A stretch of DNA of 64,000 nucleotides from IMGVR_UViG_3300017963_000190:196068-260067, one strand, 5' to 3'. Shown: positions 12,754 through 63,674, counted from the first letter of the stretch. Notes: generated by a model from the letters alone, not told the origin. Made by a program: numbers and translations.

Positions 12754-12838
12754 GGTAGCGTACCCAAGCGGCTTACGGGGCCCGCCTGCTAAGCGGGTGC
12801 ACGGAAACGTGCCGTGGGTTCGAATCCCACCGCTACCT
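12754..12838 (+). tRNA. tRNA-Ser(GCT)
   Basis: Cloverleaf with long V-arm; CCCGC-CT GCT AA-GCGGG. Confidence 0.93.
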
Positions 12839-13330
12839 CTACTTTGCAGCTTTAAGCATGCGATCTGCCATACCGTCAAAAGCCTTCGCCACACCCATAG
12901 CGTTCGCGTAGTCCTTCTCCAATCCAAGTCGCTTTAGGAATGGAGCAAGGGCTCTGATGTCCATAGCGATGTCTGCAGCAGCCTGCATCGCCTGCTCAGC
13001 ATTCATCTGTGCTTTTTTGTACACCTTTCCGGCGATACGTACTTCATCAGAATCGTCCAGGCGCTTGTACAGAACGCCTCCCACCTTGATCTGCTTCGGA
13101 GGAGCTTCTGGCTGCACGAGCTTGTACAAGTGACCACCCATCTTGATCTTCTTCGGAGGAGGCGTGGATGCCTTAGTTTCTTTTCCCTTGGTGGATAGAG
13201 CATCCATAGTCTTCTCGACGGTGCCCTCTGGATCTTTGGCGGTTTCAGGATCGTCCTTCTTTTGCTTGGCTTCCCACTCTTTGACTTCTTTGCCCACTTC
13301 AGATTTCTTGTTGTCTTTTTCCTTTGCCAT
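12839..13330 (-). CDS. PxxIxxxGxxY-motif protein (3 copies)
   Basis: PKKIKMGGHLY, PKQIKVGGVLY, EVRIAGKVY. Confidence 0.75.
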   Translation of the reverse strand: MAKEKDNKKSEVGKEVKEWEAKQKKDDPETAKDPEGTVEKTMDALSTKGKETKASTPPPKKIKMGGHLYKLVQPEAPPKQIKVGGVLYKRLDDSDEVRIAGKVYKKAQMNAEQAMQAAADIAMDIRALAPFLKRLGLEKDYANAMGVAKAFDGMADRMLKAAK

Positions 13331-13362
13331 GAGGTGCCTCGAATATTAGTTGTGGGTGAGAA

Positions 13363-13839
13363 CTACTCACCAGGGGTTTCTTCGGTCTCGCAGAGGGATT
13401 TCAAGCTGTCCGCGAGTGTGCAGATTTGGTCGACTGTGATTCCAGCGCCGCCCAAAACCATTTTGATTACTTCAGCAGCGTCGGGAGGTATATCGGTGGC
13501 AGCGAACTTTTCTTTCCACAGCTGCGGGTAGTCCACGCCAAACCGTGCGGCAAGCTCCTCCGCTTTTGCCCGCGTGTCTTTTAGAGGATCGCCGATAATC
13601 CCAGGCATTGGGGTTGTCTTGCTAGGCAGCGCGGACTTAGCCCTGTACACCCATTGAAGGTTTGCGTAGTCCTCTTTCTCCAGCTGCCCGTCGTCTCTTT
13701 TTCTTTCCATCGCACGGGCCAGGTTGTGCAATAGGACACCAAGCACACGCTTTTCGAGGTCGAATCTGCTAGGTTCTTGTGGATCCGCCTGTACATACAG
13801 CTGGCCTTTGTAGCGAATACGAGAAGGTGGTTTGGTCAT
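13363..13839 (-). CDS. PxxIxxxGxxY-motif protein
   Basis: MTKPPSRIRYKGQLY; GAGGG SD; the longer ORF call overlaps a tRNA. Confidence 0.7.
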   Translation of the reverse strand: MTKPPSRIRYKGQLYVQADPQEPSRFDLEKRVLGVLLHNLARAMERKRDDGQLEKEDYANLQWVYRAKSALPSKTTPMPGIIGDPLKDTRAKAEELAARFGVDYPQLWKEKFAATDIPPDAAEVIKMVLGGAGITVDQICTLADSLKSLCETEETPGE

Positions 13840-13901
13840 ACTGATCCCTCTTACACAGCTTTTGGGGGTTGCATAGGATTCAGTAATAGATAACTTGTTT
13901 C

Positions 13902-13987
13902 GGTGAGTTGGCCGAGATGGTTTAAGGCGGTGCACTCGAACTGCACTGTACCGAAAGGTACCAAGGGTTCGAATCCCTTACTCACCT
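13902..13987 (+). tRNA. tRNA-Ser(CGA)
   Basis: GTGCA-CT CGA AC-TGCAC; long V-arm. Confidence 0.93.
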
Positions 13988-14070
13988 TACCGGATAAGCG
14001 ACGGCCGGTAGGCTTGGCCAGCCAAATCACCTAACTGGGTCACAGAGATCTTTTGGTGGTACGTCGCGCA
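13988..14070 (+). ncRNA. pseudoknotted tRNA-trailer RNA motif, copy 1
   Basis: TACCGG/CCGGTA, GCGACG/CGTCGC, GGC/GCC, TCACC/GGTGG; repeated after tRNA-Tyr. Confidence 0.65.
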
Positions 14071-14075
14071 AATCT

Positions 14076-14425: not shown

Positions 14426-15472
14426 ATGCCTATTTACGCTGGAATAGGGAGCAGGAATCCGTCTAGCAGTGTTTCTGCTTTGGCCCGAAAAGTAGCCCGA
14501 TACCTCGCTGTTAGCGGGCATACCCTACGAACAGGCGCCGCAAAAGGAATCGACCAGATCATGGCCGAGGCAGCCTTGGAGGTAGGCGGCCCCGTAGATC
14601 TCTGCCTTCCATGGGATACTTTTTCGAGAGATTGGGTGCGGCGCATACGTGATCGGTTTGGATCGCTGGTCCAGCTGGAACCGTTGCTTAGTAGCGATGA
14701 AGAAGCATTCCACTCGGTACAAGCATTCCACCCAAATCCCGACGCACTGAAACGCAACGGTCTTCGGTTGCACGCCAGGAATTACCGAATTCTACATCCA
14801 ATCGGAGGAGGGCTTGTACGTTGCGTGGTAGCCGCACCTCGGAATAATAGTGGCGGTACCATGCAAGGCGTACGGATCGCCGAGACATTGCAGGTACCTG
14901 TTGTGCGGTTGGACCTAGTCCCAGCTATGGACGTCAAACGTTGGTTGGACAAACGCCTTGGAATGAAGAAGCCAAAAGGTGCAACTCTGCTACAGGCACA
15001 GCGCCATGTGCAAGAAGCACTAAAACCTGGCGCCGGGGCAATTGATTGTCCCTGCTGTAAACAGCGGGTCCAGCTCTACAGGCGGCGCTTAAACAGCGAG
15101 ATGGCGCGCTGGCTGATCCTTCTATCCAGGGTGTTCCTGTCTAATGGGCGTAGGTGGGTAAGCGTTAAGGATTCACCTCTTAAAGAGACCCGCGGAGGGG
15201 ACTACGCCAAGCTGCAGCACTGGGGTTTAATCGAGCAGCGCCCAAACACTGATGAGAAGAAACGTACCTCAGGGTATTGGCGCCCAACTACAAAAGGGGT
15301 CAATTTCGCGAAGAACCGTACCAGGGTTCCTTCTCATATCTACATCTTCAACAACACAGTTTACGGGCAATCAGAAGAAACCGTTTCCATAGTAGACGCG
15401 CTAGGCGTGAAGTTCGACTACCGGGATGTAGTGCGCACAGCATTGAAGAGTAATACAAAGGAAAAGAAATGA
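14426..15472 (+). CDS. SLOG/DprA-like Rossmann domain fused to a Zn-ribbon/winged-helix-like domain
   Basis: YAGIGSR, LRTGAAKGID, SGGTMQGVRIA; CPCC. Confidence 0.7.
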   Translation: MPIYAGIGSRNPSSSVSALARKVARYLAVSGHTLRTGAAKGIDQIMAEAALEVGGPVDLCLPWDTFSRDWVRRIRDRFGSLVQLEPLLSSDEEAFHSVQAFHPNPDALKRNGLRLHARNYRILHPIGGGLVRCVVAAPRNNSGGTMQGVRIAETLQVPVVRLDLVPAMDVKRWLDKRLGMKKPKGATLLQAQRHVQEALKPGAGAIDCPCCKQRVQLYRRRLNSEMARWLILLSRVFLSNGRRWVSVKDSPLKETRGGDYAKLQHWGLIEQRPNTDEKKRTSGYWRPTTKGVNFAKNRTRVPSHIYIFNNTVYGQSEETVSIVDALGVKFDYRDVVRTALKSNTKEKK

Positions 15473-15766: not shown

Positions 15767-16549
15767 ATGGACGCAAAAAGCAAGGCTGAGTGGCTACGGA
15801 AGCACAGATACTGGTCATACAAAGAAATCTCTGTCCACCTTGGAGTTCCTAAGTCTACTGTTTGTTACTGGCTACGCGACATTCAGCTTACGGCGGTGGA
15901 GCAGGCAGAGATTGGCGCTAGAACTAAGGAGCTAGTTAAGCATGCTGCGATTGCATCAAACAAGCGCAGAAAGGGAGAGAAAAGGCGTTACGCGCGCAGA
16001 CGTTCTAGTGCTACTCGTGGGCCCAGCCACGCAGAGCGTGCTAGGGAGAACAGGCAGCATTTATTGACCAAAAGTAGGGAGCGTGTAAAGTTGCATGGAT
16101 TACAGATGACCCAAGATTCCTTGGCTTTAGTAGGAGCTGCTATTTACTGGGCTGAGGGGGAGAAAATCGGCAGTATGGCTTTATCCAACTCCGACCCTGC
16201 GCTCCTACAGTTGTATGTTCGTTGGTTGACTACTATTTTACGTGTTGATCCAAGAAGGTTATCTTTTAGGGTGTCCGCTCACTTAGATTGCTCCTTTTCT
16301 CACAGTGAGCTGGAAGAATACTGGCGTACTGTACTGTCTATGCCTAAGGCTGTATTTGAGAAGCCGTATTCGATTCCTATTAAAAATAAGAAGAGGAGAA
16401 AAAAGTTGAAGCATGGAATGCTTCGTGTGCGCGTTTCGCGCCCATTGCGTAGTCTTGCTAAGTATTACTCGGTAGCTGAGATCCTTGGTGTGGACGCCGA
16501 GTCCTTGTTTGTAAACCGTGTATCACCATTACACGTTTTGGAGGAGTGA
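15767..16549 (+). CDS. HTH + LAGLIDADG-like putative homing endonuclease
   Basis: SYKEISVHLGVPKSTVCYW HTH; VGAAIYWAEGEK...LSNSDP; paralog at 58129. Confidence 0.7.
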   Translation: MDAKSKAEWLRKHRYWSYKEISVHLGVPKSTVCYWLRDIQLTAVEQAEIGARTKELVKHAAIASNKRRKGEKRRYARRRSSATRGPSHAERARENRQHLLTKSRERVKLHGLQMTQDSLALVGAAIYWAEGEKIGSMALSNSDPALLQLYVRWLTTILRVDPRRLSFRVSAHLDCSFSHSELEEYWRTVLSMPKAVFEKPYSIPIKNKKRRKKLKHGMLRVRVSRPLRSLAKYYSVAEILGVDAESLFVNRVSPLHVLEE

Positions 16550-16624
16550 CCGAATTGGCGAAAGTGCTTGGCTTGAAACCAAGTGTACCGAAAGGTACTG
16601 GGGGTTCGAATCCCTCCTCCTCCG
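16540..16624 (+). tRNA. tRNA-Ser(TGA), intact copy inside the cassette
   Basis: CTTGG-CT TGA AA-CCAAG; long V-arm. Confidence 0.92.
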
Positions 16625-16625
16625 T

Positions 16626-16675
16626 TTGAAAGCCATTGGGCGAAAGCCCCGGGGGTTCGAATCCCTCACCTGCCG
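16626..16675 (+). pseudogene. 3' half of the disrupted tRNA-Ser(TGA)
   Basis: TTGAAA-GCCAT, V-arm GGGC-GAAA-GCCC, T-arm, ACCTGCC-G complementary to GGCAGGT. Confidence 0.85.
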
Positions 16676-18708: not shown

Positions 18709-18797
18709 GGTGGGTTGTCCGAGTCTGGCTTAAGGTGCTGTCTTGGAACGGCAGTGCACCCTAACTGGTGCCGGGGGTTCGAATCCCTCACCCACCG
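18709..18797 (+). tRNA. tRNA-Ser(GGA)
   Basis: CTGTC-TT GGA AC-GGCAG; long V-arm. Confidence 0.92.
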
Positions 18798-18827
18798 TAC
18801 AAGCCCAATTATGCTACGAGGCTTTTT

Positions 18828-19055
18828 ATGAACACTTTATACTTGGTCATGCAAAAAGAAGTGTACCACATTATTGTTTTGAATTCTGGGGAGCATGGTG
18901 ACCGTACCGCATGTGGAATTGAGACCTACACAAAAGACGGTAACACCAGCTATGGAACGCGCCCCTCCTACGTTTCGGAAGAGCTCCCCACCGAAAGTCG
19001 CTTTTGCAAAGCTTGCGCTAAAGCTTTGGTGAAGCACACCCCCGCGCCCCTGTAG
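18828..19055 (+). CDS. hypothetical Zn-binding protein
   Basis: H...CG...CKAC; stop overlaps tRNA-Thr. Confidence 0.5.
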   Translation: MNTLYLVMQKEVYHIIVLNSGEHGDRTACGIETYTKDGNTSYGTRPSYVSEELPTESRFCKACAKALVKHTPAPL

Positions 19056-19118
19056 CTCAGTCGGCAGAGCATCTCCTTGGTAGGGAGGAGGTCGCTGGTT
19101 CAATTCCAGTCGGGGGCT
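19046..19118 (+). tRNA. tRNA-Thr(GGT)
   Basis: Cloverleaf; TT GGT AG loop. Confidence 0.9.
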
Positions 19119-19121
19119 TCT

Positions 19122-19193
19122 GGTCCCGTAGTCTAGCGGTCAGGACACCGGCCTCTCACGTCGGAAGCCCGGGTTCAATTCCCGGCGGGATCA
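19122..19193 (+). tRNA. tRNA-Glu(CTC)
   Basis: Cloverleaf; CT CTC AC loop. Confidence 0.92.
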
Positions 19194-19224
19194 TTTCCAA
19201 TCACATATTGTAAAATAAGGCTAT

Positions 19225-19297
19225 GCGGGAGTAACTCAATTGGTAGAGTGTCAGCCTTCCAAGCTGAACGTTGCGGGTTCAAGTCCCGTTTCCCGCT
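19225..19297 (+). tRNA. tRNA-Gly(TCC)
   Basis: Cloverleaf; CT TCC AA loop. Confidence 0.93.
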
Positions 19298-19313
19298 CTA
19301 CGTTGGATGGGCC

Positions 19314-19568
19314 ATGTCAGAGGTATTCTCCAAAGAGGAATCCGATCGTTTCTTCTCGCTGAGAAAGAAGGGATGGCGGGAGTGTACCTACCGAGAACTA
19401 AGTTGGGCGCGTAAGCTGCTTTTACGTATAGTAGAGGCTAAAGCTGTCCATCGATTCTATGGCAGCGAGGAGGCACTGACGTGGGCTTTTCCTCTCGATT
19501 TCGCGTCCCTTGATAATCTTGTGCGCGACGCAAGGGAAACCTTCCAGCGGAAGGTGAAGCTTGTTTAA
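19314..19568 (+). CDS. hypothetical protein
   Basis: Start moved downstream of the tRNA. Confidence 0.5.
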   Translation: MSEVFSKEESDRFFSLRKKGWRECTYRELSWARKLLLRIVEAKAVHRFYGSEEALTWAFPLDFASLDNLVRDARETFQRKVKLV

Positions 19569-19588
19569 TTACGGAGGCAGCATTATCC

Positions 19589-19876
19589 ATGGCAACTGTC
19601 AAAATGATCACAGCTCCTGAGAACAAAATCTCCGTCAACGGCTACTACGACAAAGTTGTTGATGGTGGGTGGGTTACTTTTGAGCCAGAGGCAGCGATAG
19701 AGATCCGCCGGGATCCACATCTTCCGAAAGAAGTACCTACTGTGATCATACATGAGGGAAACGAAAAAATCGATTTGGTGCGACGTCTTAAACTCTACGA
19801 ACACGCGTTTATCGGGCTAGCGTTGTGGTGCACTGCACTCACAGCCGTGGCGGTAATTCTATTTTTGCGGGGGTAG
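19589..19876 (+). CDS. membrane-anchored hypothetical protein
   Basis: C-terminal hydrophobic helix; GGAGG SD. Confidence 0.55.
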   Translation: MATVKMITAPENKISVNGYYDKVVDGGWVTFEPEAAIEIRRDPHLPKEVPTVIIHEGNEKIDLVRRLKLYEHAFIGLALWCTALTAVAVILFLRG

Positions 19877-19939
19877 CTCAGTTGGCAGAGCGACGGCTTG
19901 CCAAGCCGTAGGTCGCGGGTCCGAATCCCGTTCCCCGCT
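19867..19939 (+). tRNA. tRNA-Gly(GCC)
   Basis: Cloverleaf; TT GCC AA loop. Confidence 0.9.
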
Positions 19940-20039
19940 CAACTTTTCCGGCAAAGCTGCGAAGTAACTTACTTTCTAAATAATAGGCTAAATCGTATGT
20001 TTGTGTTTAGTCACCTTTTATTCAGTTAGGGGACTCACG

Positions 20040-20447
20040 ATGAAAGCCGGGAATGGCGGTAATAATGGAACCCAATCAAAGGCAGTGACCGTGGACTTTG
20101 AGAGCAACCTCAAAGTCTTGCATAGACCGAGAAATTGTCCGTCGTCGCGTCCGTGCCGACGCCTGGAGTGTCGTTATCACTTGGCAATTGATGCGGTATC
20201 TAGGCGTAGGCGCCCAACGTTTCGACATAATTTTCCGGGGGTACCTCTTGAGGATCTCCAAGAAACCTGCGCATTAGAAGCAGCGGAGCGAAACGGTGGC
20301 TTAACTCACGCAGAGATTGCTGTTCTCATGAACACGTCCACGGAACAGATTAAACAGATAGAGCAAGTAGCGCTCAAAAAAGTGAGTATCAAACTCCGGG
20401 AGCTTAGGAGTACTGGTGATCTTTATCCCTCACTTTTGTTAGTGTAG
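20040..20447 (+). CDS. sigma-70 region-4-like HTH protein with Cys motif
   Basis: GLTHAEIAVLMNTSTEQIKQIEQVALKKV; RPCRRLECRYHL. Confidence 0.7.
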   Translation: MKAGNGGNNGTQSKAVTVDFESNLKVLHRPRNCPSSRPCRRLECRYHLAIDAVSRRRRPTFRHNFPGVPLEDLQETCALEAAERNGGLTHAEIAVLMNTSTEQIKQIEQVALKKVSIKLRELRSTGDLYPSLLLV

Positions 20448-20488
20448 CTCAGCAGGTAGAGCACCTCCTCGTGGTTATTGGTCTTGAT

Positions 20489-20573
20489 GCCCGGGTCGCC
20501 TAGTTGGTCGATGGCACCGGATTTGTAATCCGGAAGCTTTAAGCTCACGCAGGTTCGAATCCTGTCCCGGGCT
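20489..20573 (+). tRNA. tRNA-Thr(TGT) with a long variable arm
   Basis: CCGGA-TT TGT AA-TCCGG; V-arm AGCT-TT-AAGCT. Confidence 0.8.
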
Positions 20574-20590
20574 TTTCCTTGGAGGACGCT

Positions 20591-20866
20591 ATGGGATCAA
20601 AAACAGCAGAAGGTTACGTTTGCATAAAGAACGTGACAGACTTGCTGAAGATTGCAGAGGACCACCCAGGAATAAACACCGTGCGTTACTACGATAGTCT
20701 GGCTTTTGGGGATCTCATTCAAGTGTATCTGTGGGATTCAGGGAACCATCGAGGGCACGGTGGGTTGTGCTTAACGAAAGACCAGTTTGAGCTGTTTAAG
20801 AAAAAAGCACCTAATTTGCATTTTGTTAATTATGCCCATACGGGGGGTATTAAATGCAACCTTTAA
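20591..20866 (+). CDS. hypothetical protein
   Basis: GGAGG SD; similar to the next ORF. Confidence 0.55.
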   Translation: MGSKTAEGYVCIKNVTDLLKIAEDHPGINTVRYYDSLAFGDLIQVYLWDSGNHRGHGGLCLTKDQFELFKKKAPNLHFVNYAHTGGIKCNL

Positions 20867-21072
20867 CGTCCGATGATATAGTGAAGCTTATAGAAGCGAA
20901 CCCTGAGATCGAAGTCGTCCAATACGAGTCCCTGCATTTGAATGGTCAAATTCACGTGGAGCTTCTGGACAGCAATCGTCAATATATTATCGGCGGTGCC
21001 GTGCTTACTAGCCAGGATTTCTCTTCGATACAAACGCAACTTGGAGGACGGGTGAGATTTTTGCCAGCGTAG
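20854..21072 (+). CDS. hypothetical protein, paralog of the upstream ORF
   Basis: Shared P.I..V.Y.SL....I.V.L.DS....GG..LT pattern. Confidence 0.55.
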   Translation: MQPLTSDDIVKLIEANPEIEVVQYESLHLNGQIHVELLDSNRQYIIGGAVLTSQDFSSIQTQLGGRVRFLPA

Positions 21073-21134
21073 CTCAGGCGGCAGAGCAGTGGTTTCGTAC
21101 TCCACAGGTGCCGGTTCGACTCCGGTCGCTGGCT
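21063..21134 (+). tRNA. tRNA-Thr(CGT)
   Basis: Cloverleaf; TT CGT AC loop. Confidence 0.88.
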
Positions 21135-21137
21135 CTT

Positions 21138-21209
21138 GTCGGGGTAGTTCAGCAGGCCGAACAGCTGGCTCATATCCAGTAGACGCGGGTTCGAATCCCG
21201 CCCTCGACA
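21138..21209 (+). tRNA. tRNA-Met or Ile2 (CAT), elongator type
   Basis: CT CAT AT loop; paired 1:72. Confidence 0.85.
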
Positions 21210-21213
21210 TTTT

Positions 21214-21285
21214 GAGCGGGTAGTCAAGTGGTTTGGCGCGGCTCTGCAAAAGCCGTTTACGTGGGTTCAAATCCCATCCCGCTCT
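21214..21285 (+). tRNA. tRNA-Cys(GCA)
   Basis: CT GCA AA loop; U73. Confidence 0.9.
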
Positions 21286-21682: not shown

Positions 21683-22138
21683 ATGGGCAAGCTGCTTTTC
21701 AAAGTGACGCGTAAGGACCTGAAGGTCGAATTTTTTCGTGCCGGCGGTAAAGGCGGTCAGCATCAAAACAAGACCTCGTCTGCGTGCCGCATCCGGCATC
21801 CTCCCTCTGGGGCTGTAGGGGAGTCCAGAGAGGAGCGTAGCCAGCATCAAAATAGACGCATCGCCTTTAAGCGGATGGCGCAGTCCAAAAAGTTCCAGAA
21901 TTGGGCCAGAGCTCAAGCTGCTGCTATTGAGCAGGGCTACCGAGACACGGAACAAAAAGTGTCTCAGATGATGGCGTCTGATAATGTAAAGATCGACTAC
22001 GTCACCACTTGGGAATGTGATGGTTGTGGGAAGACCGAGACCATCACAGCTTCCGATCCCAACAAGAAGCCCGAGTGGTTAGCTATAGGAGAGCTCCAAG
22101 AAGAGGAGCACTTGTGCACTAGATGCGCAGGCAAGTAA
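21683..22138 (+). CDS. RF-1 domain (GGQ) peptidyl-tRNA hydrolase, ArfB/PrfH-like, with C-terminal Zn ribbon
   Basis: [27 protein letters not shown]...[12 protein letters not shown]. Confidence 0.88.
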
Positions 22139-22142: not shown

Positions 22143-22216
22143 CGGGGATGTGGTGTAACCCGGTAACACGCGTGCTTTGGGAGCACGAGTTCGAAGTTCA
22201 AATCTTCCATCCCCGA
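22143..22216 (+). tRNA. tRNA-Pro(TGG)
   Basis: CGTGC-TT TGG GA-GCACG; slightly irregular T-stem. Confidence 0.85.
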
Positions 22217-23127: not shown

Positions 23128-23449
23128 AGAAGCAGAGCGCCTCGGCCTGCAGATAGAGCGACTGCTCACCTGGGATTTCGGAAAAGGTATGGCACGCCGT
23201 TTGGCAGAGGGTGAGCTCCCCGACCGTATTCTTTACGGCCTTGATGAGCTTGAGATCTCCAACAAACTCGTGGCGCGTGGGGACCAAGAATTCCCTGAAG
23301 ACATTGTTACTTGTGAGCAAACAGGGCTTCCTCTGCGTCCCCTTTATATTCACCTTCCCAGTGGGAGGATAAAACGCGCTGTACCTATTAGTTGGGGCGA
23401 GGGCGTCGATTACTATGATTACCGAGACCTCGCAGGAGCAAGCAAGTGA
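23111..23449 (+). CDS. hypothetical protein
   Basis: Collinear, overlapping ORF. Confidence 0.55.
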   Translation: MSIAREEAERLGLQIERLLTWDFGKGMARRLAEGELPDRILYGLDELEISNKLVARGDQEFPEDIVTCEQTGLPLRPLYIHLPSGRIKRAVPISWGEGVDYYDYRDLAGASK

Positions 23450-23850
23450 TCAAGCATGTAGATTTCTTTCCGGAAGACGTTCTTGTGAACATGCCAGGGG
23501 ACGAGTACACCGGTGTTATTTCCATCTGCGATATCGATCACAACGTTGATAGGCTTTTTGACCACCGGTGGGCACAAGTGCTTCGGTTGAAATTCGACGA
23601 CATCGATCACCCGCGTCCACACTATCACCTTTTTACGGAGACCCAAGCAAGGCATATTCTACAGTGGCTAGAAAAACATGCTGGCTCGTTGTTGGCCATT
23701 TACGTGCATTGCTGGGCAGGAGTTTCACGCTCCGCTGCTGTGGCACGATTCATTGCGCGTAAGTATGGATTACCATTTGACGAGGCGAAAGGAAAGTCGT
23801 ACAATCGCTACGTTTACTCGATGCTAGAGAGCGTAGACGCGCAGAGATAA
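23446..23850 (+). CDS. protein-tyrosine / dual-specificity phosphatase-like protein
   Basis: CX5R motif VHCWAGVSRS; FDD acid loop. Confidence 0.85.
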   Translation: MIKHVDFFPEDVLVNMPGDEYTGVISICDIDHNVDRLFDHRWAQVLRLKFDDIDHPRPHYHLFTETQARHILQWLEKHAGSLLAIYVHCWAGVSRSAAVARFIARKYGLPFDEAKGKSYNRYVYSMLESVDAQR

Positions 23851-23931
23851 AATATACGGCGGCAGTTGGGAAAGGCCAGCCTTTCCCCCTCCCCAGTCCC
23901 CCTTTGGTCTATTACCTCCTTGCCGCCATTT

Positions 23932-24005
23932 GGGGCCATAGCTCAGCTCGGGAGAGCGCTTGACTGGCAGTCAAGAGGTCGTGGGTTCGATCCCCACTGG
24001 CTCCA
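23932..24005 (+). tRNA. tRNA-Ala(GGC)
   Basis: G3-U70; CT GGC AG loop. Confidence 0.93.
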
Positions 24006-24025
24006 TCACACAGAGGAATTACACG

Positions 24026-24241
24026 ATGACTAATGAGCAAATCGATAAGCTCACCGACATTATCTGCACGATGATGCTAGACTTTCAAAGCCGTACACCC
24101 GACAATCCCATCACCCGCGAGGATATTCGAGGCTACGTCGTGAAGGTGAACGAGGTCGAAGAGCCAGAGAAAGAAGAGCTCCCCGACCGCGAGCCCACGT
24201 ACATCACCTTTCCTGTTGGGCACACCGCCAGCACTTGGTGA
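24026..24241 (+). CDS. hypothetical protein
   Basis: GAGG SD after the tRNA. Confidence 0.5.
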   Translation: MTNEQIDKLTDIICTMMLDFQSRTPDNPITREDIRGYVVKVNEVEEPEKEELPDREPTYITFPVGHTASTW

Positions 24242-24249
24242 AATTTTAA

Positions 24250-24323
24250 GGGGCCATAGCTCAGTTTGGGAGAGCACCGCCCTTGCAAGGCGGGTGTCGC
24301 CGGTTCGAGCCCGGCTGGCTCCA
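24250..24323 (+). tRNA. tRNA-Ala(TGC)
   Basis: G3-U70; CT TGC AA loop. Confidence 0.93.
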
Positions 24324-24372
24324 TTATTCACCTCCTCTGCGCAGCATTGGAGCTGCGAAGGAGGATATAGCC

Positions 24373-24618
24373 ATGAGGCTAAGCATTGGAAGTCACGTTG
24401 TGTTTATCGACACCCATTACCAGGAGCACGAAGCGCTGATCACCGCCATTCACGGTGACCCCGCATCCAAGCCGTGTGTGAACCTGCTCTACGTTTCTAA
24501 GCAGACGGGGAAGCAGGACCAATACGGCCAGCAGATCGAGCGCCCCTCTTCGGTGGTCCACATCAAGGACAACACCGCGGGTGGGTACTGCTGGAAGTTC
24601 CCTGGAGAGGAGAAGTAG
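24373..24618 (+). CDS. small SH3-like phage protein
   Basis: IGSHVVFID...ALITAIH...VNL; AGGAGG SD. Confidence 0.6.
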   Translation: MRLSIGSHVVFIDTHYQEHEALITAIHGDPASKPCVNLLYVSKQTGKQDQYGQQIERPSSVVHIKDNTAGGYCWKFPGEEK

Positions 24619-24813
24619 CGTGACAGCCGTGGCTGGGGCCGAGCAGGCGCCTGCCCCCACGGGTTCTAGTGCTGCGTAGAGGAGGCGTAATTGCCCTTAT
24701 CCATGAAACTTACCTTGGCACTATTCAGCGCGCTCGTATTCACCTACGGTTGCGTGCGCTTGCTTCTGCATTTGCTACTGACCCCGTTCTGTGGGCGATA
24801 AGGAATCGGAGCA

Positions 24814-25020
24814 ATGACACAAGTTCGCACAACTACCCTGTTTGCTGTGGTGGATGAAACAGGAGCAACTGCGCCTCTTTACCTGGGTGGTGACAATGAT
24901 GGCCTCAGCGTCTTTTTGACGCGGGAGCGCGCAGAGTACTTCAAGAATGAGTACCAACAGCTTTTTCCCGAAAAAGAGTTTGTGATACAGGAATTCGGAG
25001 TCCTTCCAGACGAAGAATAG
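24814..25020 (+). CDS. hypothetical protein
   Basis: GGAG SD. Confidence 0.5.
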   Translation: MTQVRTTTLFAVVDETGATAPLYLGGDNDGLSVFLTRERAEYFKNEYQQLFPEKEFVIQEFGVLPDEE

Positions 25021-25043
25021 CTCAGCAAAGGAGGCGAGCAAAA

Positions 25044-25703
25044 ATGAGGAACGTACAGAGAGCTGCAGTAGCAATTGTGGCGTTAGCCCTTGTGGCCGGA
25101 TGCCCACCACCTGATCCAAACAACCCAGCTAGCAAGTATCAGCCAGGCTACACGACTGTGACCATTGCTAAAGCGGTGCTCAACGCCGGTTACGCAACTT
25201 TCATGGGTGTGGAAGCCAATGTGCGCGAGGGATGCACCAAGAAGATCTGCGTTAAGCTGCATCCTGATCAAGGCAGCCAAGCATTCAAGGATTGCATGGG
25301 GAAGGATCACTCCGCTGCCCCAGAGTTCAAAACGTGTTATGGAAAGATGGCTCAAGCTAAGGCTATCATCGATAAGGTTCATCCTCTAGCAATATCGGTG
25401 ATCGACGAGGTGAAGGCAGCTTTAGATTTTGTAGTGCAATATGAAATTGCGAAACTGGCCAAGGAAAATGCGAAAGATCCAGCGAAACTCAAGGAATTCT
25501 GCGACAAGGTGTTCCCTGCAAAATCGGGCGAAGAGTATCAGAAGTGCATCGCTGGTCAGCCATTAAAAAAGGGAGATTGGGACGGCCTCTTGAAAAAGGG
25601 ATCCTGCTTGGTGTACAATGGTCTGGCCTTTTTCCCAGATCAGTACGCCAAGTACGTGATGCCTGTGCGTATCTGGTTCAAGGGTTACGGCGGATGTAAG
25701 TAG
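25044..25703 (+). CDS. Cys-rich putative lipoprotein
   Basis: LVAGC lipobox; internal CxxxxxPxxxxxxxxxC repeat. Confidence 0.7.
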   Translation: MRNVQRAAVAIVALALVAGCPPPDPNNPASKYQPGYTTVTIAKAVLNAGYATFMGVEANVREGCTKKICVKLHPDQGSQAFKDCMGKDHSAAPEFKTCYGKMAQAKAIIDKVHPLAISVIDEVKAALDFVVQYEIAKLAKENAKDPAKLKEFCDKVFPAKSGEEYQKCIAGQPLKKGDWDGLLKKGSCLVYNGLAFFPDQYAKYVMPVRIWFKGYGGCK

Positions 25704-25752
25704 CCACAACGCCTTCCCTCCGCGATCCAGCCTTTATGGAAAGAGCGCAACG

Positions 25753-26250: not shown

Positions 26251-26253
26251 ACT
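26225..26253 (+). promoter_or_regulatory. sigma70 promoter for tRNA-fMet
   Basis: TTGACA-17 nt-TAGACT. Confidence 0.7.
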
Positions 26254-26266
26254 CCTTAACGTTTGT

Positions 26267-26342
26267 TGCGGAGTAGGGAAGTCAGGCCGTTCCCGCCGGG
26301 CCCATAACCCGGAGATCGCAAGTTCAAATCTTGCCTCCGCTA
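26267..26342 (+). tRNA. initiator tRNA-fMet(CAT)
   Basis: 1:72 mismatch; GGG/CCC in the anticodon stem. Confidence 0.88.
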
Positions 26343-49915: not shown

Positions 49916-49921
49916 GAGTTA

Positions 49922-50568: not shown

Positions 50569-51372
50569 ATGGTACCTACTATGATCGTGAGCGTCACTCT
50601 GTCTATTTTGACGCTCACACCCACACCAACATGGAACTTTGCAGTAATAGGCGACACGCAAGCTAACCCGCGGATCTTCGATCGAGCCATCGCCGACATT
50701 AAGAAAAGGAGGCCAGACTTTGCGGTCCACCTAGGGGACATGGGCTACTGCGGGAGCTACAACTTCTGGAACCGTCACCGCCGGCTCATGAAAGCGTCGG
50801 GCGTCCCCTGGAAGGTCGTGCTGGGCAACCATGAGCTTTACCAATGCGACCCCAATTTATCCAGATACTCGAAGGCGCGCTGGCTTCGCTACTGGTATAA
50901 TGACGGTGGGGCAGCTTACAGATCTTTCACACATAAGGGGATCAGGTTCCTGCTGCTTGACACAGCCAACGTATGGACGCCGCTGGCTCAGAACCTGTTC
51001 TTGCGCAAGTACCTGTCGAGCTCGAATACGGTATTCATGTTCGGCCACCGTCCCCTTCCGTACCCCCACAACCCCAAATTCACTTTCGCCGGAGGAAAGC
51101 GTTGGGTGTGGTACCGGTACATGGGACCCTCTCGACATGGCTGGGCCGGTATTCAAATGTGGAAATTAATCTACCGTTACCGCTCAAAGATCAAAGCCTA
51201 TTTTCATGGTCATCACCATAGCCGTATCGATTATAAATTGAACGGTGTCAATGTGCATTGTACAGCAGGTGGGGGAGGTAACCTAGAAACTAGCAAGGAC
51301 ATCTTCCATTATCTGATGGTGCATGTGAACGGCAGGCGGTACTCCGTAAAAACGATCCCACTGGGGAACTGA
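50569..51372 (+). CDS. secreted calcineurin-like metallophosphoesterase
   Basis: GDTQ, LGDM, GNHE, HGHHH; N-terminal hydrophobic segment. Confidence 0.88.
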   Translation: MVPTMIVSVTLSILTLTPTPTWNFAVIGDTQANPRIFDRAIADIKKRRPDFAVHLGDMGYCGSYNFWNRHRRLMKASGVPWKVVLGNHELYQCDPNLSRYSKARWLRYWYNDGGAAYRSFTHKGIRFLLLDTANVWTPLAQNLFLRKYLSSSNTVFMFGHRPLPYPHNPKFTFAGGKRWVWYRYMGPSRHGWAGIQMWKLIYRYRSKIKAYFHGHHHSRIDYKLNGVNVHCTAGGGGNLETSKDIFHYLMVHVNGRRYSVKTIPLGN

Positions 51373-55782: not shown

Positions 55783-55923
55783 GCATGAGTGGCGAAACGG
55801 AGAAGCATTGCTTCTATGAAACGCTTTATCGGTAATTGAGACGTGGCCGATACATACCGACAAGGCTGCGGTGCAAACATCGCGGCGCTTCCGGATGCAG
55901 GGTTCGAGTCCCTGCCTCGTGCA
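55783..55923 (+). ncRNA. tRNA-Leu-like RNA A (7/6 fold, anticodon arm replaced)
   Basis: GCATGAG/CTCGTGC-A; GCAGGG-TTCGAGT-CCCTGC. Confidence 0.7.
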
Positions 55924-55955
55924 AAATCCTGGGCATGATAGCAAAAACTGCCCGT

Positions 55956-56100
55956 GCGTGTGATTGCGGAAAATTGGTCCGCTACAGCAAGTTGCAGCCA
56001 CCCTTAAAAGTGCTGCACAGACACGGCTTGCTACACCAGTACAGCTTGCGTAGTGCGCTACGTATTGTTGTGCGCAGGGTTCGAGTCCCTGCCGCGCGCA
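55956..56100 (+). ncRNA. tRNA-Leu-like RNA B
   Basis: GCGTGTG/CGCGCGC-A; same T-arm. Confidence 0.7.
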
Positions 56101-56160
56101 ACACTGTAAAGTACGAGGCCTGGTTGCGCACCCGATTAAGTTCAGGGGAAAGTCCAGGGT

Positions 56161-57111: not shown

Positions 57112-57719
57112 CCGCGAGTATGTCCTATGGGGCATTTATGATAAAGGTGTTTCCTTGTTAGCGTCGGACGTAAGCCTTTTTATGGGACCGGACCCTGATG
57201 ACAAGACCGCTTGTCTGGAAGGGGTCGATCCCGAGAGCATCATCATTGTGCGGTAGCATCGGAATGCCGACAGTAGATCTGAAAGACACGGTAATCAACG
57301 TTCCCAAGAATGCGCTCACCGCACGTGTGTTCTACAACATCGGCGAGGAGCGCGTGGAAATCGCCACCGTGGTGTCTAAGCCTCCGGCTTGGGTGACAAT
57401 TCTTCGGTACGCTGCTTGCGTGTTGATTGGAGCTCTTGCAGGAGGAGCTTTTATCTGGTACACGAGATAAGCGGTTTGGGCGACGCAGGCCGCGAAACAA
57501 CGTAGCCAAGAGGGCAGTTCATATTGAACATCCATGGTGCGCTTGAAGCTGGGTTGTTGGGACAGTCGCTGCGTTGGGCGAAGCGCGCATTAAACTGCAA
57601 GCCCCGGTTTATGGGTGTTGGCCTCAGATTCCCGGCAGGACGTTACAAGCTGCCGAAACGGGCAAGTGAGCTCTTGCATTTATTGGTGGTCCCAGCTAGG
57701 ATGTAATGAGCTCGCGTCT

Positions 57720-57792
57720 TGGGGCGTCGACAAGTGGAAAGTCACCGGCTTTTGATGCCGGCATTTCGTAGGTTCGAATCCTACCGCCCCAG
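57720..57792 (+). tRNA. tRNA-Gln(TTG)
   Basis: TT TTG AT loop; U1-A72. Confidence 0.9.
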
Positions 57793-58007
57793 TAGGTGAG
57801 GGATGCAGCATTACCTCACTGTGGCAGTGTTTGAGCTAAGCGATCGTAGGTTTAAGCATTGCTGGTTGCTGTGCACAGGACCCCGCTGTGGTTAAGAAAG
57901 TGTGGGCGTTTCCGGGTACCGTGATACTCGGCGCGGACTAGTGCCTGATAACCGTGATGTAAATGCAGGCACACGGAGCTCACGGTTAGCCGCTGTGGGT
58001 TCCAAAT

Positions 58008-58083
58008 GGGCGATTAGCGAAGTGGCTTTACGCGGCGGTCCTACAAACCGCGACCTACGCTGGTTCGAACCCAGCATCGCCCA
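58008..58083 (+). tRNA. tRNA-Val(TAC), atypical (C33)
   Basis: GCGGT-CC TAC AA-ACCGC; GGGCGAT/ATCGCCC-A. Confidence 0.75.
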
Positions 58084-58128
58084 TCGAACTCCTGAGTATA
58101 GTTACCTGTAGGTAATGATCAGGAGTTC

Positions 58129-59572: not shown

Positions 59573-59856
59573 TGTGCACGGTAGTTGGCTTAAAGGCAGC
59601 CATCTTAAGAGTGAGGCGAAGACCTGCTGCCAGGATTCTGGATAGCGGACTTGAATACGGTTACTGCGGTGAATTACAAGTAGCCCAAACGCTATCGTCC
59701 GGTCGAGCCGAAAGTGCGAGCTCGCTACTCGCACGAAGAGGTTCGGGGGTAGCTCCCCCTAGACCGCCGAGGCAGGAGTATTCTCGGTTAAGTGTGAAGG
59801 CACCCCGGAGACGGTAAGGCCTGATCCCTCTTTGGCGTAATAGCACGCCGTGCACA
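59573..59856 (+). ncRNA. 23S rRNA L11-binding domain (H43/H44) mimic with a ~210-nt insertion
   Basis: GTTGGCTTAAAGGCAGCCATCTTAA...GCGTAATAGC closed by TGTGCACGG/CCGTGCACA. Confidence 0.75.
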
Positions 59857-59887
59857 TTTTTCTTTTTGTGGTAAGGAGTAATAGATC

Positions 59888-61009: not shown

Positions 61010-61235
61010 TTGTTATGGGCACCATCAGAAAAATACCCAAGTTTCTAGGCGACGGCGTGTGCATCTTCCCCGCGTTGGAGTCGGAAAAGACGGCCTACGC
61101 CAACGCTGCTCCTCTTGCTGATCAATGCGCTGTCTGCGACGGACGCGGTCAAATAATCGTGAGCAAGCCTAAGCGTCACCTGGCGTACATGACTTGCCAC
61201 GGATGTCGCGGAAAAGGCGTCAAAAAAGAATCCAC

Positions 61236-61847
61236 ATGAAGACGTACCCAAGCATTCCTTATCCAGGACGTAAAGGTGTCGGTGAACGCCTGCATACCTT
61301 TGCCAAGCTGGATGGGTCCAACCTCCGTTTCGAGTGGAGCAAGAAGCGGGGTTGGCATCGTTTTGGTACGCGCAAGCGGCTCATCGATGCCAGCACTGAG
61401 CTATTCGGGGAAGCCATTCCTCTTTTTATGGGAACGCTAGCAGATCCCATCGGGCGCATTGCCACCGACAAAAAATGGCAGAGTGTCATCGTCTTCTGCG
61501 AGTTCTGGGGAGCTGAGACCCTGGGTGGCTGGCATGTGGAAGGTGATCCAAAGCATCTTACTGTAATCGACGTCAATACCTACAAGAAAGGTTTTCTGCT
61601 GCCCACTGAGTTCTTGAAGCTCTTTGGCAGGTATGGACCGAACTATCTGGGCTACTTTACGTGGTCTCCTGGGTTTCTCCAGCAACTGCAAGACGGGGAG
61701 ATAGAAGACGCGGGTTTTGAAGGCGTCGTGGGAAAAGGCACGAAGGGCAAGAAAATAATCCGCTATAAGTATAAGACACAAGCCTGGAAAGACGCGGTCC
61801 TCGCTCGGCATGGAGAAGAGCTCGGGCGCAGGATCATCAATAGTTGA
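61236..61847 (+). CDS. putative ATP-dependent RNA ligase
   Basis: YPSI, AKLDGSN (motif I), FCEFWG, FEGVVGK, YKYKT. Confidence 0.75.
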   Translation: MKTYPSIPYPGRKGVGERLHTFAKLDGSNLRFEWSKKRGWHRFGTRKRLIDASTELFGEAIPLFMGTLADPIGRIATDKKWQSVIVFCEFWGAETLGGWHVEGDPKHLTVIDVNTYKKGFLLPTEFLKLFGRYGPNYLGYFTWSPGFLQQLQDGEIEDAGFEGVVGKGTKGKKIIRYKYKTQAWKDAVLARHGEELGRRIINS

Positions 61848-62067
61848 TGCCATGAAGGGTCGCTGGCTGCTAGCCACCAACGGACGTCGGCACTACTTTC
61901 GCACAGAGAAAGCGAAAATCAGTGTCTGTGGTTGTATGCCGATAGACCGCTGCTATCCAGAAGAAGTAAAGCCAACCCGAAGGGCGCACGATTGGCCTTG
62001 CAGCACGTGCACGCGGTATGCTAAGAAAATAGAGCAAGAGAAATCACAGTGCTGTAAATGCTGTGGC

Positions 62068-62139
62068 GCCCCTATAGTTCAACGGAAAGAGCGGCGCCCT
62101 CCTAAGGCGTAAATCCAGGTTCGATCCCTGGTAGGGGCA
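62068..62139 (+). tRNA. tRNA-Arg(CCT)
   Basis: CT CCT AA loop. Confidence 0.9.
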
Positions 62140-62142
62140 AAT

Positions 62143-62787
62143 ATGAAATTCTCAATCCAGTCGAATAGAAAGGCCAAGGAGCTCGCAACCAGCCGCCTTG
62201 ACCTGCTGGACATTGCAGGAACCCCGCTGCCGTGTATAGTGTCTTTCGACACGTCTACAATGATGGGTAAGCGCGCAGATGGCTCTGAGGTGAAGGTTGC
62301 CTCTTTTCGTTTCGTGCCAGCGAACGAAGAGGAAGAGGAAATACTGCGCGATTTTTTACCTAAGAAACTGCAGGCGCACCTTCTTCCTGTAGACAAACGA
62401 ATACTTACCCATCTATTGGATCGCAAGCTGCTTTCTGAAGCAGCCTACATTGTAGGTCGGGGAGCTCGCCCCATCGCTTTACTGGGTTGCATAGACGCTT
62501 CTGAGGAAGAGGAGCGTGAAGTCTGGCGAGCTCTGCTTGAGTCCTGTAGCTTTGAGGATGCGACCATCCGTGCCTTCGTCCTGCACCATACTATGGATGG
62601 GGATAAGGTGGTAACGTTTGGTTACGCCCAGCATCAGTGGGCCGTCGACTTGCTTAAGCATGCGTACACCAACACGATGCCTGAATGCCTCACAGATATC
62701 CTCGAAGGAGTTTTACTGGGCTACAGCTCGGAAGCTATCCAAAAACACTACGAGCGCTGTAAAATACGAGAAGAGCACAACCGTTGA
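62143..62787 (+). CDS. hypothetical protein
   Basis: C-terminal GVLLGYS..AI motif. Confidence 0.6.
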   Translation: MKFSIQSNRKAKELATSRLDLLDIAGTPLPCIVSFDTSTMMGKRADGSEVKVASFRFVPANEEEEEILRDFLPKKLQAHLLPVDKRILTHLLDRKLLSEAAYIVGRGARPIALLGCIDASEEEEREVWRALLESCSFEDATIRAFVLHHTMDGDKVVTFGYAQHQWAVDLLKHAYTNTMPECLTDILEGVLLGYSSEAIQKHYERCKIREEHNR

Positions 62788-63674
62788 GGAACCCGATGAC
62801 GCGTTACACAACCAGAGACGTGAACAAATACTACCGGGACCTAGTGACACACAACTCAGCGGCGGGTGCTCTTATTGACATGTGGGTGGAGCTGGCGTTT
62901 GAGGGGAAGCGTCTTGTCTTTCATCATCCGCAGGGAGAACGGGAGGCGGCTAGGTTCGCGGAGGCTCTCCCTGGAATGATCGGGTCTGATCTATACATAC
63001 TCCTGACTGAATACCTGGTCTTCGGCCGCTTCGTGGCGCACGCTATTTTAGATGTCACGACGTACAACTATGAAGATCTCATCGTTGAAGACCTGGATTA
63101 CTGCCACATAACCATCAGCCCTTTAAATACCTTCGAACCGAAGGTGGAATTGTGCTGTAGCGAAGAGCAGCAAAAGTGGGCGTCTTCGCTCGATCCGCGT
63201 GTGGCGGAGCAGAGAAAAAACATCGATCCGAAAATAGTGGAGCTCTTACGTGCAGGGAAGCCAATTACTTTAAAGAATCCGCTTTTCTTGCCGCGTATGG
63301 CGCACGCGCATGATTATTTTGGTACATCCTACTTGGCAGGTGTCAAACCTGACATGTCTCCAGATGAAACGTTTACTGCGGTTGGCTTAATGCTTCCTTA
63401 CTGCGTGACAAACGAGAGGTTATTTCAAGAGCAGTTCTTGAACTATGCTGCCGAGCTACGCAGTCGCATCACGAACTACATTCTTCGGGAACAGCTTCTC
63501 CCGAGGATTGCCGAGGCCGCCGGCTACTCGGAAATCCCGTCGTACGCTTGGCTTGAAGACTCCGTGATGCCTCGTGATCCGAAGGCTATTGTTGTTCAAG
63601 CTTTGAAGGCAGCGGGGATAAATTGTTTCGGATACGCAGGAGAAAATCGCGAATCTGTAGAGCAATCTTGTTAA
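62784..63674 (+). CDS. truncated portal-protein-like paralog
   Basis: GALIDMWVEL...EYLVFG...DLDYC...EPKVEL...GKPI...HDYFGTS resembles jumbo-phage portal N-terminal halves. Confidence 0.5.
   Translation: MRNPMTRYTTRDVNKYYRDLVTHNSAAGALIDMWVELAFEGKRLVFHHPQGEREAARFAEALPGMIGSDLYILLTEYLVFGRFVAHAILDVTTYNYEDLIVEDLDYCHITISPLNTFEPKVELCCSEEQQKWASSLDPRVAEQRKNIDPKIVELLRAGKPITLKNPLFLPRMAHAHDYFGTSYLAGVKPDMSPDETFTAVGLMLPYCVTNERLFQEQFLNYAAELRSRITNYILREQLLPRIAEAAGYSEIPSYAWLEDSVMPRDPKAIVVQALKAAGINCFGYAGENRESVEQSC

Follow-up and report, generated by a model that had tools for sequence, protein, structure and literature searches.

Why would a phage gather dozens of tRNA genes, RNA-repair enzymes and a ribosomal RNA look-alike in one part of its chromosome? 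The question is raised by the segment 12754–63674 of a 64,000-nt stretch of viral DNA (IMGVR_UViG_3300017963_000190:196068-260067), referred to here as the window. A first-pass annotation had read the segment as a coordinated counter-defense program against abortive-infection systems that attack translation, using RNA and protein look-alikes as well as repair. The reading that we favor, with a probability of roughly 0.7, is that the segment makes up most of an accessory translation island of ~65 kb, and that it carries a member of a family of RNAs resembling the GTPase-associated center (GAC) of 23S rRNA, in a marine jumbo phage of ~326 kb. By analogy with T4, T5 and the huge phages, such an island would best be understood as one that serves translation autonomy and repair.

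Large tRNA islands have been seen in jumbo phages before, and how they help to escape immunity that targets tRNAs is a topic of current study. What appears to be new is the rRNA-domain look-alike in tRNA arrays, a two-gene RlmN-like enzyme, and paralogs of structural genes inside a tRNA island. The sequence features, homologies, covariation and genomic associations reported below are direct observations.

The tRNA Array and the Phage That Carries It

The window is the final 64 kb of a 260,067-bp IMG/VR viral contig, which has 52% GC and a CheckV completeness of 74%. A second IMG/VR contig, of 73,299 bp and from another data set, overlaps the window end (position 64000) with 100% identity, and the far end of this second contig overlaps the start of the 260-kb contig. 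Thus, the genome closes at ~326,220 bp. A sediment DNA metagenome (2018) and a seawater DNA metagenome (2021) contain the sequence. A megablast search of 12 kb against the phage collection gave no match, and the phage has no close relative there. The closing contig also encodes a transposase (phrog_506), an ARPP-1 and vWA pair, terminase, the portal and the major capsid protein.

Both ARAGORN and Rfam place 37 tRNA genes in 12754–62139, 35 of which lie on the plus strand, with scores of 35 to 74 bits. They cover 19 amino acids, Trp being absent, and the earlier estimate of ~36 tRNAs for 19 amino acids is confirmed. No tRNA gene is found elsewhere in the 260-kb contig, and the closing contig supplies another eight in the first 14.2 kb beyond the window end (Met, five Leu, Ile-TAT and Asp-ATC). 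Together, the two contigs yield an island of ~65 kb with 45 tRNAs. Under wobble rules, the 45 decode 97.6% of the codons in the long open reading frames (ORFs) of the phage; only UGG and CGG are unread. The genes therefore make up a phage tRNA gene array, i.e., clustered and co-oriented cloverleaf genes whose set reads the phage's own codons. The tRNA clusters of T4, T5 and the mycobacteriophages likewise have co-oriented tRNAs that are interspersed with homing endonucleases and small ORFs and accompanied by phosphoesterases and an RNA ligase, but the set described here is much larger and nearly complete. An island of this kind would free phage protein synthesis largely from the host tRNA pool and would let it tolerate damage to that pool.

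Almost no tRNA gene encodes its 3′ CCA. Both minus-strand tRNAs, Leu-AAG and Ser-AGA, are non-canonical. The Met(CAT) tRNA in the 23931–28521 group is initiator-like: its anticodon stem contains three G-C pairs, and positions 1 and 72 are mismatched. Odd anticodon loops also occur, with C33 in four tRNAs and a pyrimidine at position 37 in one. In otherwise good tRNAs, C33 (Tyr, Met and Val-TAC) or T37 (Val-GAC) is seen at 14323–14395, 26266–26343, 40627–40702 and 58007–58085. Similar anticodon-loop changes have been proposed to give phage tRNAs resistance to anticodon nucleases (PMC10264068), and phage tRNAs can serve as counter-defense by bypassing tRNA-cleaving defenses (PMC10264068, PMC11555353, PMC12409363). 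The latter precedent also favors the broader view, considered further below, that the look-alikes in the island are decoys.

A GAC-Like RNA in the Window

The rRNA look-alike sits in a 319-nt ORF-free gap at 59569–59887. A hairpin resembling helix 43 (H43) of 23S rRNA, at 59584–59604, has 19 of the 21 bases of E. coli 23S positions 1059–1079. A loop resembling that of helix 44 (H44), GCGTAATAGC, follows at 59835–59844 after an insert of ~230 nt. A closing helix pairs 59579–59586 with 59850–59857 and surrounds the H43-like hairpin, the insert and the H44-like loop. That is, both GAC loops, including the positions of A1067 and A1095, lie within a closing helix. The H43 and H44 motifs occur once each in the 326 kb, 248 nt apart and on the same strand.

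The element differs from the contiguous, ~58-nt three-way junction of a 23S gene in that it has the ~230-nt insert, lacks 23S flanks, and is surrounded by phage ORFs and tRNAs. The 23S GAC mimic proposed in the first-pass annotation is thus present, and it proves to be one member of a large phage RNA family. A possible 16S-tail mimic fared otherwise, as matches in the window to the 16S 3′ tail, and to the sarcin-ricin loop, were short and at chance level. Toward the 3′ end of the insert, at ~59805–59828, is an inner module, CACCCC-(tetraloop)-GGTAAGG, which is also seen in many family members.

A Phage RNA Family in tRNA Arrays

IMG/VR was scanned with the H43 hairpin pattern, and the matches listed come from 118 contigs, a lower bound to which the locus counts below refer. 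A phage-type continuation (..TAANGAGT) is found in 109 of these loci, hence in at least 109 viral contigs, and the true 23S type in only 3. Captured fragments of host 23S genes, or contamination, are thereby ruled out as the source of the matches. Across the listed loci there are 688 tRNAs per 1.05 Mb, every one on the strand of the element, and a tRNA lies within 500 nt of it in 64 loci. The GC content of the loci runs from 31% to 69%.

The structure is conserved as well. In the 39 distinct elements that could be delimited at both ends, the closing helix averages 8.1 bp, against 4.5 bp in controls with mismatched 5′ and 3′ halves. RNAalifold analysis of 20 members predicts the closing helix, the H44 hairpin and an extension of H43, and places a further helix at the base of the insert, with compensatory changes in 15 of 23 pairs. 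The window copy has the conserved termini, the covarying closing helix, the H43 extension and the insert-base helix of the family. A covariance model built solely from eight phage elements matches the window at 59571–59860 (32.4 bits, E 5e-7), Xanthomonas phage XacN1 (E 1.7e-13) and dozens of other loci. It finds nothing else in this phage, and it retrieves the true GAC of E. coli (E 2.6e-9). Beyond the search patterns, the conserved bases G1055, A1057, U1081-A1088 and C1102-C1104 track rRNA, a pattern that points beyond a common fold to a common ligand.

To summarize, the GAC-like RNAs of phages form a large family, usually located in tRNA arrays on the tRNA strand. With the 23S GAC (helices 42–44) it shares H43, an identical H44 loop GCGUAAUAGC, junction bases and the closing helix. 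In contrast to the 23S GAC, it lies outside any 23S gene, the delimited members carry an extra helix or domain of ~70–340 nt between A1088 and G1091, which creates a four-way junction, and the family has conserved bases of its own (GAGU, UUUGG and ACAC).

Cultured carriers include XacN1, GAP32, Serratia phage BF, Pseudomonas phage pf16 and Aeromonas phage 4_4572. In the two cultured-phage records checked, XacN1 and Aeromonas 4_4572, the element falls in an unannotated gap. In XacN1, it is directly downstream of a gene annotated as a 2′-5′ RNA ligase, which again connects the RNA with genes for RNA repair. Rfam 15 gave no family at E ≤ 5 for the window element and none at the gathering score for 12 related loci. 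No description of a phage GAC mimic was found in the literature searched, a partial coverage that included the text of the 224-motif paper. The cultured carriers make phage rRNA mimicry directly testable at the bench.

Rescue, Repair and Modification Proteins

The proteins encoded among the tRNAs fit an island concerned with translation. The first-pass annotation had named a GGQ factor, an RNA ligase, two metallophosphoesterases, a CX5R phosphatase, a split RlmN and Pth2. All but the last were confirmed, and the Pth2 match is weak (coordinates and scores in Table 1). The GGQ protein is closer to the corresponding domains of RF1, RF2 and PrfH than to ArfB. It has in common with ArfB/YaeJ and PrfH that the GGQ hydrolase domain forms a small stand-alone protein, but its tail is a Cys4-type ribbon, whereas that of ArfB is a basic helix. 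The protein is predicted to be a peptidyl-tRNA hydrolase that acts on the ribosome. For the Pth2-like protein, the ten best Atlas clusters by language-model features are all PTH2, a weak lead with a top score of 0.89 that agrees with the sub-threshold Pfam match. Together, the GGQ hydrolase and the Pth2-like protein would release or recycle stalled peptidyl-tRNA.

The RNA ligase has both the KxDGxN motif and the expected fold, with an Atlas score of 0.98 and a TM of 0.90 to PF09414 clusters. Both metallophosphoesterases, of the calcineurin-like type, exceed the Pfam gathering score, and the phosphatase has the HCX5R P-loop. A PDB search gave no meaningful match for the RNA ligase, the Pth2-like protein or the 47-aa ORF discussed below. 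The ligase, the two metallophosphoesterases and the cysteine phosphatase could heal and seal cut RNA.

The tRNA region of T4 pairs Pnkp and Rnl1 against PrrC. In contrast to the ligases of the T4, T5 and mycobacteriophage clusters, that of the island is a 203-aa Rnl2-type domain alone, and the island adds the GGQ, Pth2-like and RlmN-like genes and the rRNA-domain mimic.

The RlmN-like protein is a radical S-adenosylmethionine (SAM) core that has the CX3CX2C cluster and is without the N-terminal domain and the C-terminal cysteine of RlmN. Residue V70 of the core sits where 76 of 120 listed homologs have Cys. A 47-aa ORF just downstream aligns to residues 328–359 of E. coli RlmN, including the methyl-carrier C355, and thus encodes the second piece of a split enzyme. 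Homologs of the core number more than 2000 at E ≤ 1e-5, and the 120 listed are 260–285 aa long. The microprotein, ~43 aa in other huge phages, turned up at each of the three further loci examined, which represent two independent phage contigs: it directly follows the core in a 481-kb phage contig, and in another contig it is 2 kb away from the core. A frameshift or assembly error in RlmN was ruled out, since the 120 listed homologs are equally short (~262 aa) and the microprotein is a separate conserved ORF.

The pair thus shares with RlmN/Cfr the CX3CX2C cluster, a homologous core, and the AACGQL motif with the methyl-carrier cysteine, but it consists of a ~262-aa core plus a ~45-aa microprotein, with no N-terminal domain and no equivalent of C118. 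It is a conserved two-gene RlmN-like enzyme, new in that the predicted catalytic cysteine is carried on the microprotein. It could modify tRNA or rRNA.

What Weighs Against the Island Reading

Several results count against the reading of the segment as a translation island with a GAC-like RNA. The first group concerns family scores. The GGQ protein scores 34.1 bits with the NCBIfam ArfB model (cut-off 100) and 67.8 with PrfH TIGR03072 (cut-off 166.65). The Pth2-like protein reaches 16.5 bits with PF01981 (cut-off 23; E 0.0016), the RNA ligase 19.7 with Pfam (cut-off 27), the phosphatase 22.9 with DSPc (cut-off 33.5; E 8e-5), and the RlmN-like core 76 with TIGR00048 (cut-off 290). In addition, Gly stands at the C118 position of the core. 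The second group concerns expression and pathway. The phage sequence is listed in the two DNA metagenomes and in no RNA run, and no promoter or terminator signal above chance was found around the GAC-like RNA. A motif scan of the window for Walker A found it only in an 83-aa ORF without a family, and no kinase P-loop of the T4-type Pnkp-plus-ligase kind lies beside the ligase; a complete T4-style heal-and-seal pathway is therefore not shown.

Finally, the genes that surround tRNA arrays and GAC-like RNAs are not conserved from one phage to another. Among the 118 listed GAC-type loci, metallophosphoesterase 1 recurs in six and every other island protein in at most two. Homologs of the GGQ protein have tRNAs nearby in 3 of 12 loci, and on one 30-kb contig the phosphatase and the GGQ protein are found together with seven tRNAs. 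The comparative check that had been suggested thus showed weak co-occurrence of the proteins, and their rare recurrence indicates a modular island rather than a fixed, operon-like program.

To see in the segment an island of translation support and counter-defense is reasonable, and the claim of a coordinated counter-defense program is partly supported. The parts list fits translation under attack, as do the rescue and repair enzymes, the precedent of phage tRNAs and the conserved GAC look-alike; against coordination stand the rare recurrence of the proteins, a portal fragment without a short homolog, and the abundance of mobile elements. Expression, every biochemical activity and any decoy or counter-defense role are predictions from sequence.

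tRNA-Like Elements, Structural-Gene Paralogs and Mobile DNA

The main alternative to a translation island is that the segment is a recombination and homing hotspot that grew by neutral accretion. On this account, only the standard tRNAs and a few enzymes do useful work; the portal fragment and the tRNA-like elements, with perhaps the capsid paralog, are duplicates in decay and have no function. The tRNA-like elements bear on it in both directions. The whole genome was searched for orphan T-arms, i.e., a perfect 5-bp stem and a TTCRANN loop outside the called tRNAs. Thirteen were found against ~1.35 expected by chance, 12 of them in the island and nine in the window, and the "about ten tRNA mimics" of the earlier annotation are thus real as sequence features. 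Some have acceptor-like stems, and several give weak tRNA calls at relaxed ARAGORN thresholds. Two relaxed calls, 40283–40352 and one just beyond the window end, have the Trp-like anticodon CCA. Many of these elements score below threshold, and a partial tRNA half follows a tRNA-Ser, as accretion would have it. When the other non-coding gaps of the island were compared with ~1 Mb of phage tRNA-array DNA, the only match was one tRNA-like piece, which resembles neighboring tRNAs. The perfect 5-bp stems and canonical loops of the orphan T-arms, however, do not look like decay. Working tRNAs, decoys and decaying copies are all possible identities for these elements.

A GC-rich stretch of ~1.6 kb, 55159–56751, has no convincing ORF, and its two identical T-arm hairpins are 177 nt apart. 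In 55159–56250, the folding z-scores are weak (−1.0 to −1.8), and the stretch has no Rfam match.

Two structural genes have copies in the island, where the first-pass annotation had noted protein fragments resembling capsid and portal. Over 285 aa, window 30755–31861 shows 25.6% identity (E 4e-24) to the capsid protein proper, which is 383 aa long and encoded on the closing contig, and the paralog lies ~70 kb from the structural genes. T4 gp24 is a paralog of gp23. The island gene is, like gp24, a second capsid-protein copy in one genome (~26% identical here), but the accompanying portal copy is an N-terminal third only. The portal fragment is 36% identical to residues 83–260 of the true, 772-aa portal (BLASTP E 1e-34) and ends in ~100 aa of unrelated C-terminus; it is thus not a full-length portal, which is encoded on the closing contig. 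No homolog of similar length was found among 5.8 billion proteins, as expected of a decaying piece. Against decay, both paralogs keep long open frames in spite of their divergence. Other proposed protein look-alikes were not recovered: six-frame searches of the window with PF00009 for EF-Tu (no match at E ≤ 1) and with PF15919 for HicB were empty, and the sole PolA copy (PF00476) is far outside the window.

Mobile DNA is plentiful. There are two HNH genes, the transposase, and three HTH_23 paralogs at tRNA genes (15767–16549, 58129–58833 and a third beyond the window end); in two of the three, the start immediately follows a tRNA gene. With these, the degenerate tRNAs, the capsid paralog and the portal fragment, the island is a hotspot of mobile DNA and duplication, from which it follows that some of the "mimics" may be decaying duplicates. 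Mobile elements could equally have left the degenerate tRNAs and the portal fragment behind as by-products. Nevertheless, the GAC-like RNA is conserved and covaries across phages of 31–69% GC, so that neutral accretion leaves it unexplained. As an account of the whole segment, neutral accretion is a serious minority view that we place appreciably below even odds.

Possible Roles of the GAC-Like RNA

Within the island reading, the function of the GAC-like RNA can be pictured in two ways. In the first, the RNA is no decoy: the element would borrow the very stable GAC fold to scaffold the tRNA-array transcript or to signal its processing, or it would be, as proposed for GOLLD and ROOL, a large structured RNA with a function of its own. 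The variable and often long insert and the conserved inner module of many members are in keeping with this, as is the position of the element on the tRNA strand, adjoining tRNAs. Moreover, GOLLD and ROOL are phage-associated structured RNAs that also adjoin tRNAs, with which they are thought to share a transcript (PMC5737381). The GAC-like RNA resembles them as a phage structured RNA beside tRNA genes, but no Rfam family matches it, be it GOLLD, ROOL, the L10 leader or another, and it is shorter (about 140–415 nt) and defined by its copy of an rRNA domain. Since conservation outside the search patterns tracks rRNA itself and so points to a shared ligand, we consider a non-decoy role possible but on the doubtful side.

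In the second, which belongs to the reading that we favor, the GAC-like RNA would be transcribed and cut out together with the tRNAs, and would bind whatever usually recognizes the GAC, be it free uL11 or some factor or toxin directed against this site. No phage-encoded uL11 was found in this genome. At least one bacterial toxin is known to attack the GAC, by ADP-ribosylating helix 44 (PMC8661411). On a bolder proposal, which we hold to be unlikely as it stands, the RNA would be the first recognized of a widespread class of phage rRNA-domain decoys, processed from tRNA arrays, folding like the uL11/thiostrepton site, and either soaking up uL11 or intercepting GAC-directed effectors and toxins; the RlmN-like enzyme and the portal and capsid paralogs might then be further countermeasures. 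If it were true, the soaking up of uL11 could blunt RelA-dependent stringent signaling. Should the RNA bind uL11 or a GAC-directed effector, the struggle between phage and host over translation would reach beyond tRNAs, to the factor-binding site of the ribosome.

Some defense sensors are triggered by portal and capsid proteins. The most sweeping view, that the tRNA-like elements, the GAC-like RNA, the capsid paralog and the portal fragment are all decoys against abortive infection, accompanied by repair enzymes, can draw on these sensors, on the tRNA precedent, on the GAC as a toxin target and on the existence of all these look-alikes in the sequence, yet it is distinctly improbable, given that the portal fragment is unique to this phage, that the capsid paralog could equally be structural, as is T4 gp24, that the protein components do not travel together in other phages, and that the EF-Tu, PolA, HicB and 16S-tail pieces were not found in the window.

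Features of the Segment

Table 1. Annotated features of the window, in order of position.
Feature	Position	Strand	Basis or remark
tRNA-Ser(GCT)	12754-12839	+	ARAGORN, Rfam
tRNA-Ser(CGA)	13902-13987	+	ARAGORN, Rfam
tRNA-Tyr(GTA)	14075-14164	+	ARAGORN, Rfam
tRNA-Tyr(GTA), 73 nt, C33	14323-14395	+	ARAGORN, Rfam, anticodon loop
DprA/SLOG-like N-terminal domain fused to phrog_2693 domain	14426..15472	+	PF02481 E 9e-8; phrog_768, phrog_2693
HTH_23 protein	15767..16549	+	Pfam; 3′ end overlaps start of tRNA-Ser(TGA)
tRNA-Ser(TGA)	16539-16625	+	ARAGORN
Partial tRNA-like 3′ half, after tRNA-Ser(TGA)	within 16539..16675	+	T-arm at 16651
tRNAs Ser(GGA), Thr(GGT), Glu(CTC), Gly(TCC), Gly(GCC), Thr(TGT), Thr(CGT), Met(CAT), Cys(GCA), small ORFs between	18709..21285	+	ARAGORN, Rfam
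Stand-alone GGQ (RF-1 domain) protein, 151 aa, C-terminal CxxC...CxxC tail	21683..22138	+	Pfam RF-1 E 2e-20; PDB release factors E 4e-14
tRNA-Pro(TGG)	22143..22216	+	ARAGORN, Rfam
Cysteine phosphatase, HCWAGVSR (HCX5R)	23446..23850	+	phrog_5614 E 1.5e-25; motif
tRNAs Ala(GGC), Ala(TGC), Met(CAT), Asp(GTC), Glu(TTC), Ala(CGC), small ORFs between	23931..28521	+	ARAGORN, Rfam
Divergent major capsid protein paralog	30662..31861	+	phrog_2522 E 5.6e-9
tRNAs Asn(GTT), Pro(GGG), Phe(GAA), Pro(CGG)	32822..33491	+	ARAGORN, Rfam
Degenerate tRNA-like element	32882-32966	+	Rfam borderline match 32906-32958; T-arm search; relaxed ARAGORN
Metallophosphoesterase 1	36062..36640	+	Pfam Metallophos 31.2 bits, cut-off 21.5
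Weak tRNA-like element	37103-37173	+	Rfam borderline, 29.5 bits
tRNA-His(GTG)	37182-37255	+	ARAGORN
HNH + helix-turn-helix homing-endonuclease-like protein	37476..37865	+	HNH_3 E 2.6e-7
tRNA-Lys(TTT)	39574..39647	+	ARAGORN, Rfam
HNH + helix-turn-helix homing-endonuclease-like protein	39663..40274	+	HNH_3 E 4.7e-10
tRNA-like, 70 nt, CCA (Trp) anticodon	40283..40352	+	Perfect T-arm, 7/7 acceptor stem; below ARAGORN default threshold
tRNAs Val(GAC), Ile(GAT), Arg(ACG)	40627..41032	+	ARAGORN, Rfam
RlmN/Cfr-like radical-SAM core, CPVRCKFC	41531..42337	+	PDB RlmN E 1.9e-11; TIGR00048 E 2e-21
47-aa ORF, motif AACGQL	42352..42495	+	Aligns to E. coli RlmN 328-359
930-aa protein, no family	43358..46150	+	No match in Pfam, PHROG, NCBIfam or phage tblastn
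Inverted cassette: DUF7873 gene, two non-canonical tRNAs, three tRNA-like elements, Pth2-like gene	47842..50347	-	
tRNA-like element	47842-47933	-	Inverted cassette
T-arm	48305-48321	-	Inverted cassette
Orphan T-arm	48740	+	
DUF7873 protein	48828-49562	-	Inverted cassette
tRNA-Leu(AAG), non-canonical	49664-49739	-	Inverted cassette
tRNA-Ser(AGA), non-canonical	49744-49837	-	Inverted cassette
tRNA-like element	49840-49919	-	Inverted cassette
Pth2-like protein	49922-50347	-	PF01981
Metallophosphoesterase 2	50569..51372	+	Pfam Metallophos 53.6 bits, cut-off 21.5
tRNA-Arg(TCT)	53212-53285	+	ARAGORN, Rfam
tRNA-Gln(CTG)	55086-55158	+	ARAGORN, Rfam
Two identical orphan T-arms CAGGGTTCGAGTCCCTG	55898 and 56075	+	In ORF-poor GC-rich 55818..56133
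Weak Ser(CGA)-like call	56047-56133	+	Relaxed ARAGORN
tRNA-Gln(TTG), tRNA-Val(TAC, C33)	57719..58085	+	ARAGORN, Rfam, anticodon loops
GAC-like non-coding RNA	59579..59857	+	H43/H44 motif match, closing helix, covariance model
RNA ligase, 203-aa Rnl2-superfamily nucleotidyltransferase domain alone, motif I KLDGSN	61236..61847	+	phrog_548 E 3.5e-8
tRNA-Arg(CCT)	62068..62139	+	ARAGORN, Rfam
Truncated paralog of the phage's own portal	62784..63674	+	phrog_16240 positions 92-268 of 643

The inverted cassette is the sole minus-strand block of the tRNA-rich stretch that runs from ~14.4 kb to the window end, and may have been acquired as one unit. DUF7873 proteins occur in 75 phage records, including phages of Gordonia, Arthrobacter, Vibrio, Rhizobium and Klebsiella. 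In Arthrobacter phage Mimi, the DUF7873 gene is ~0.5 kb downstream of an array of eight tRNAs, with one gene between, and the gene is beside tRNAs in the island too; in Pseudanabaena phage Pam2, there is no annotated tRNA near it. Outside the island, window 1–12700 has plus-strand ORFs of up to 723 aa, and the ORF at 1726–3366 has a ligase-like motif, KLDGER.

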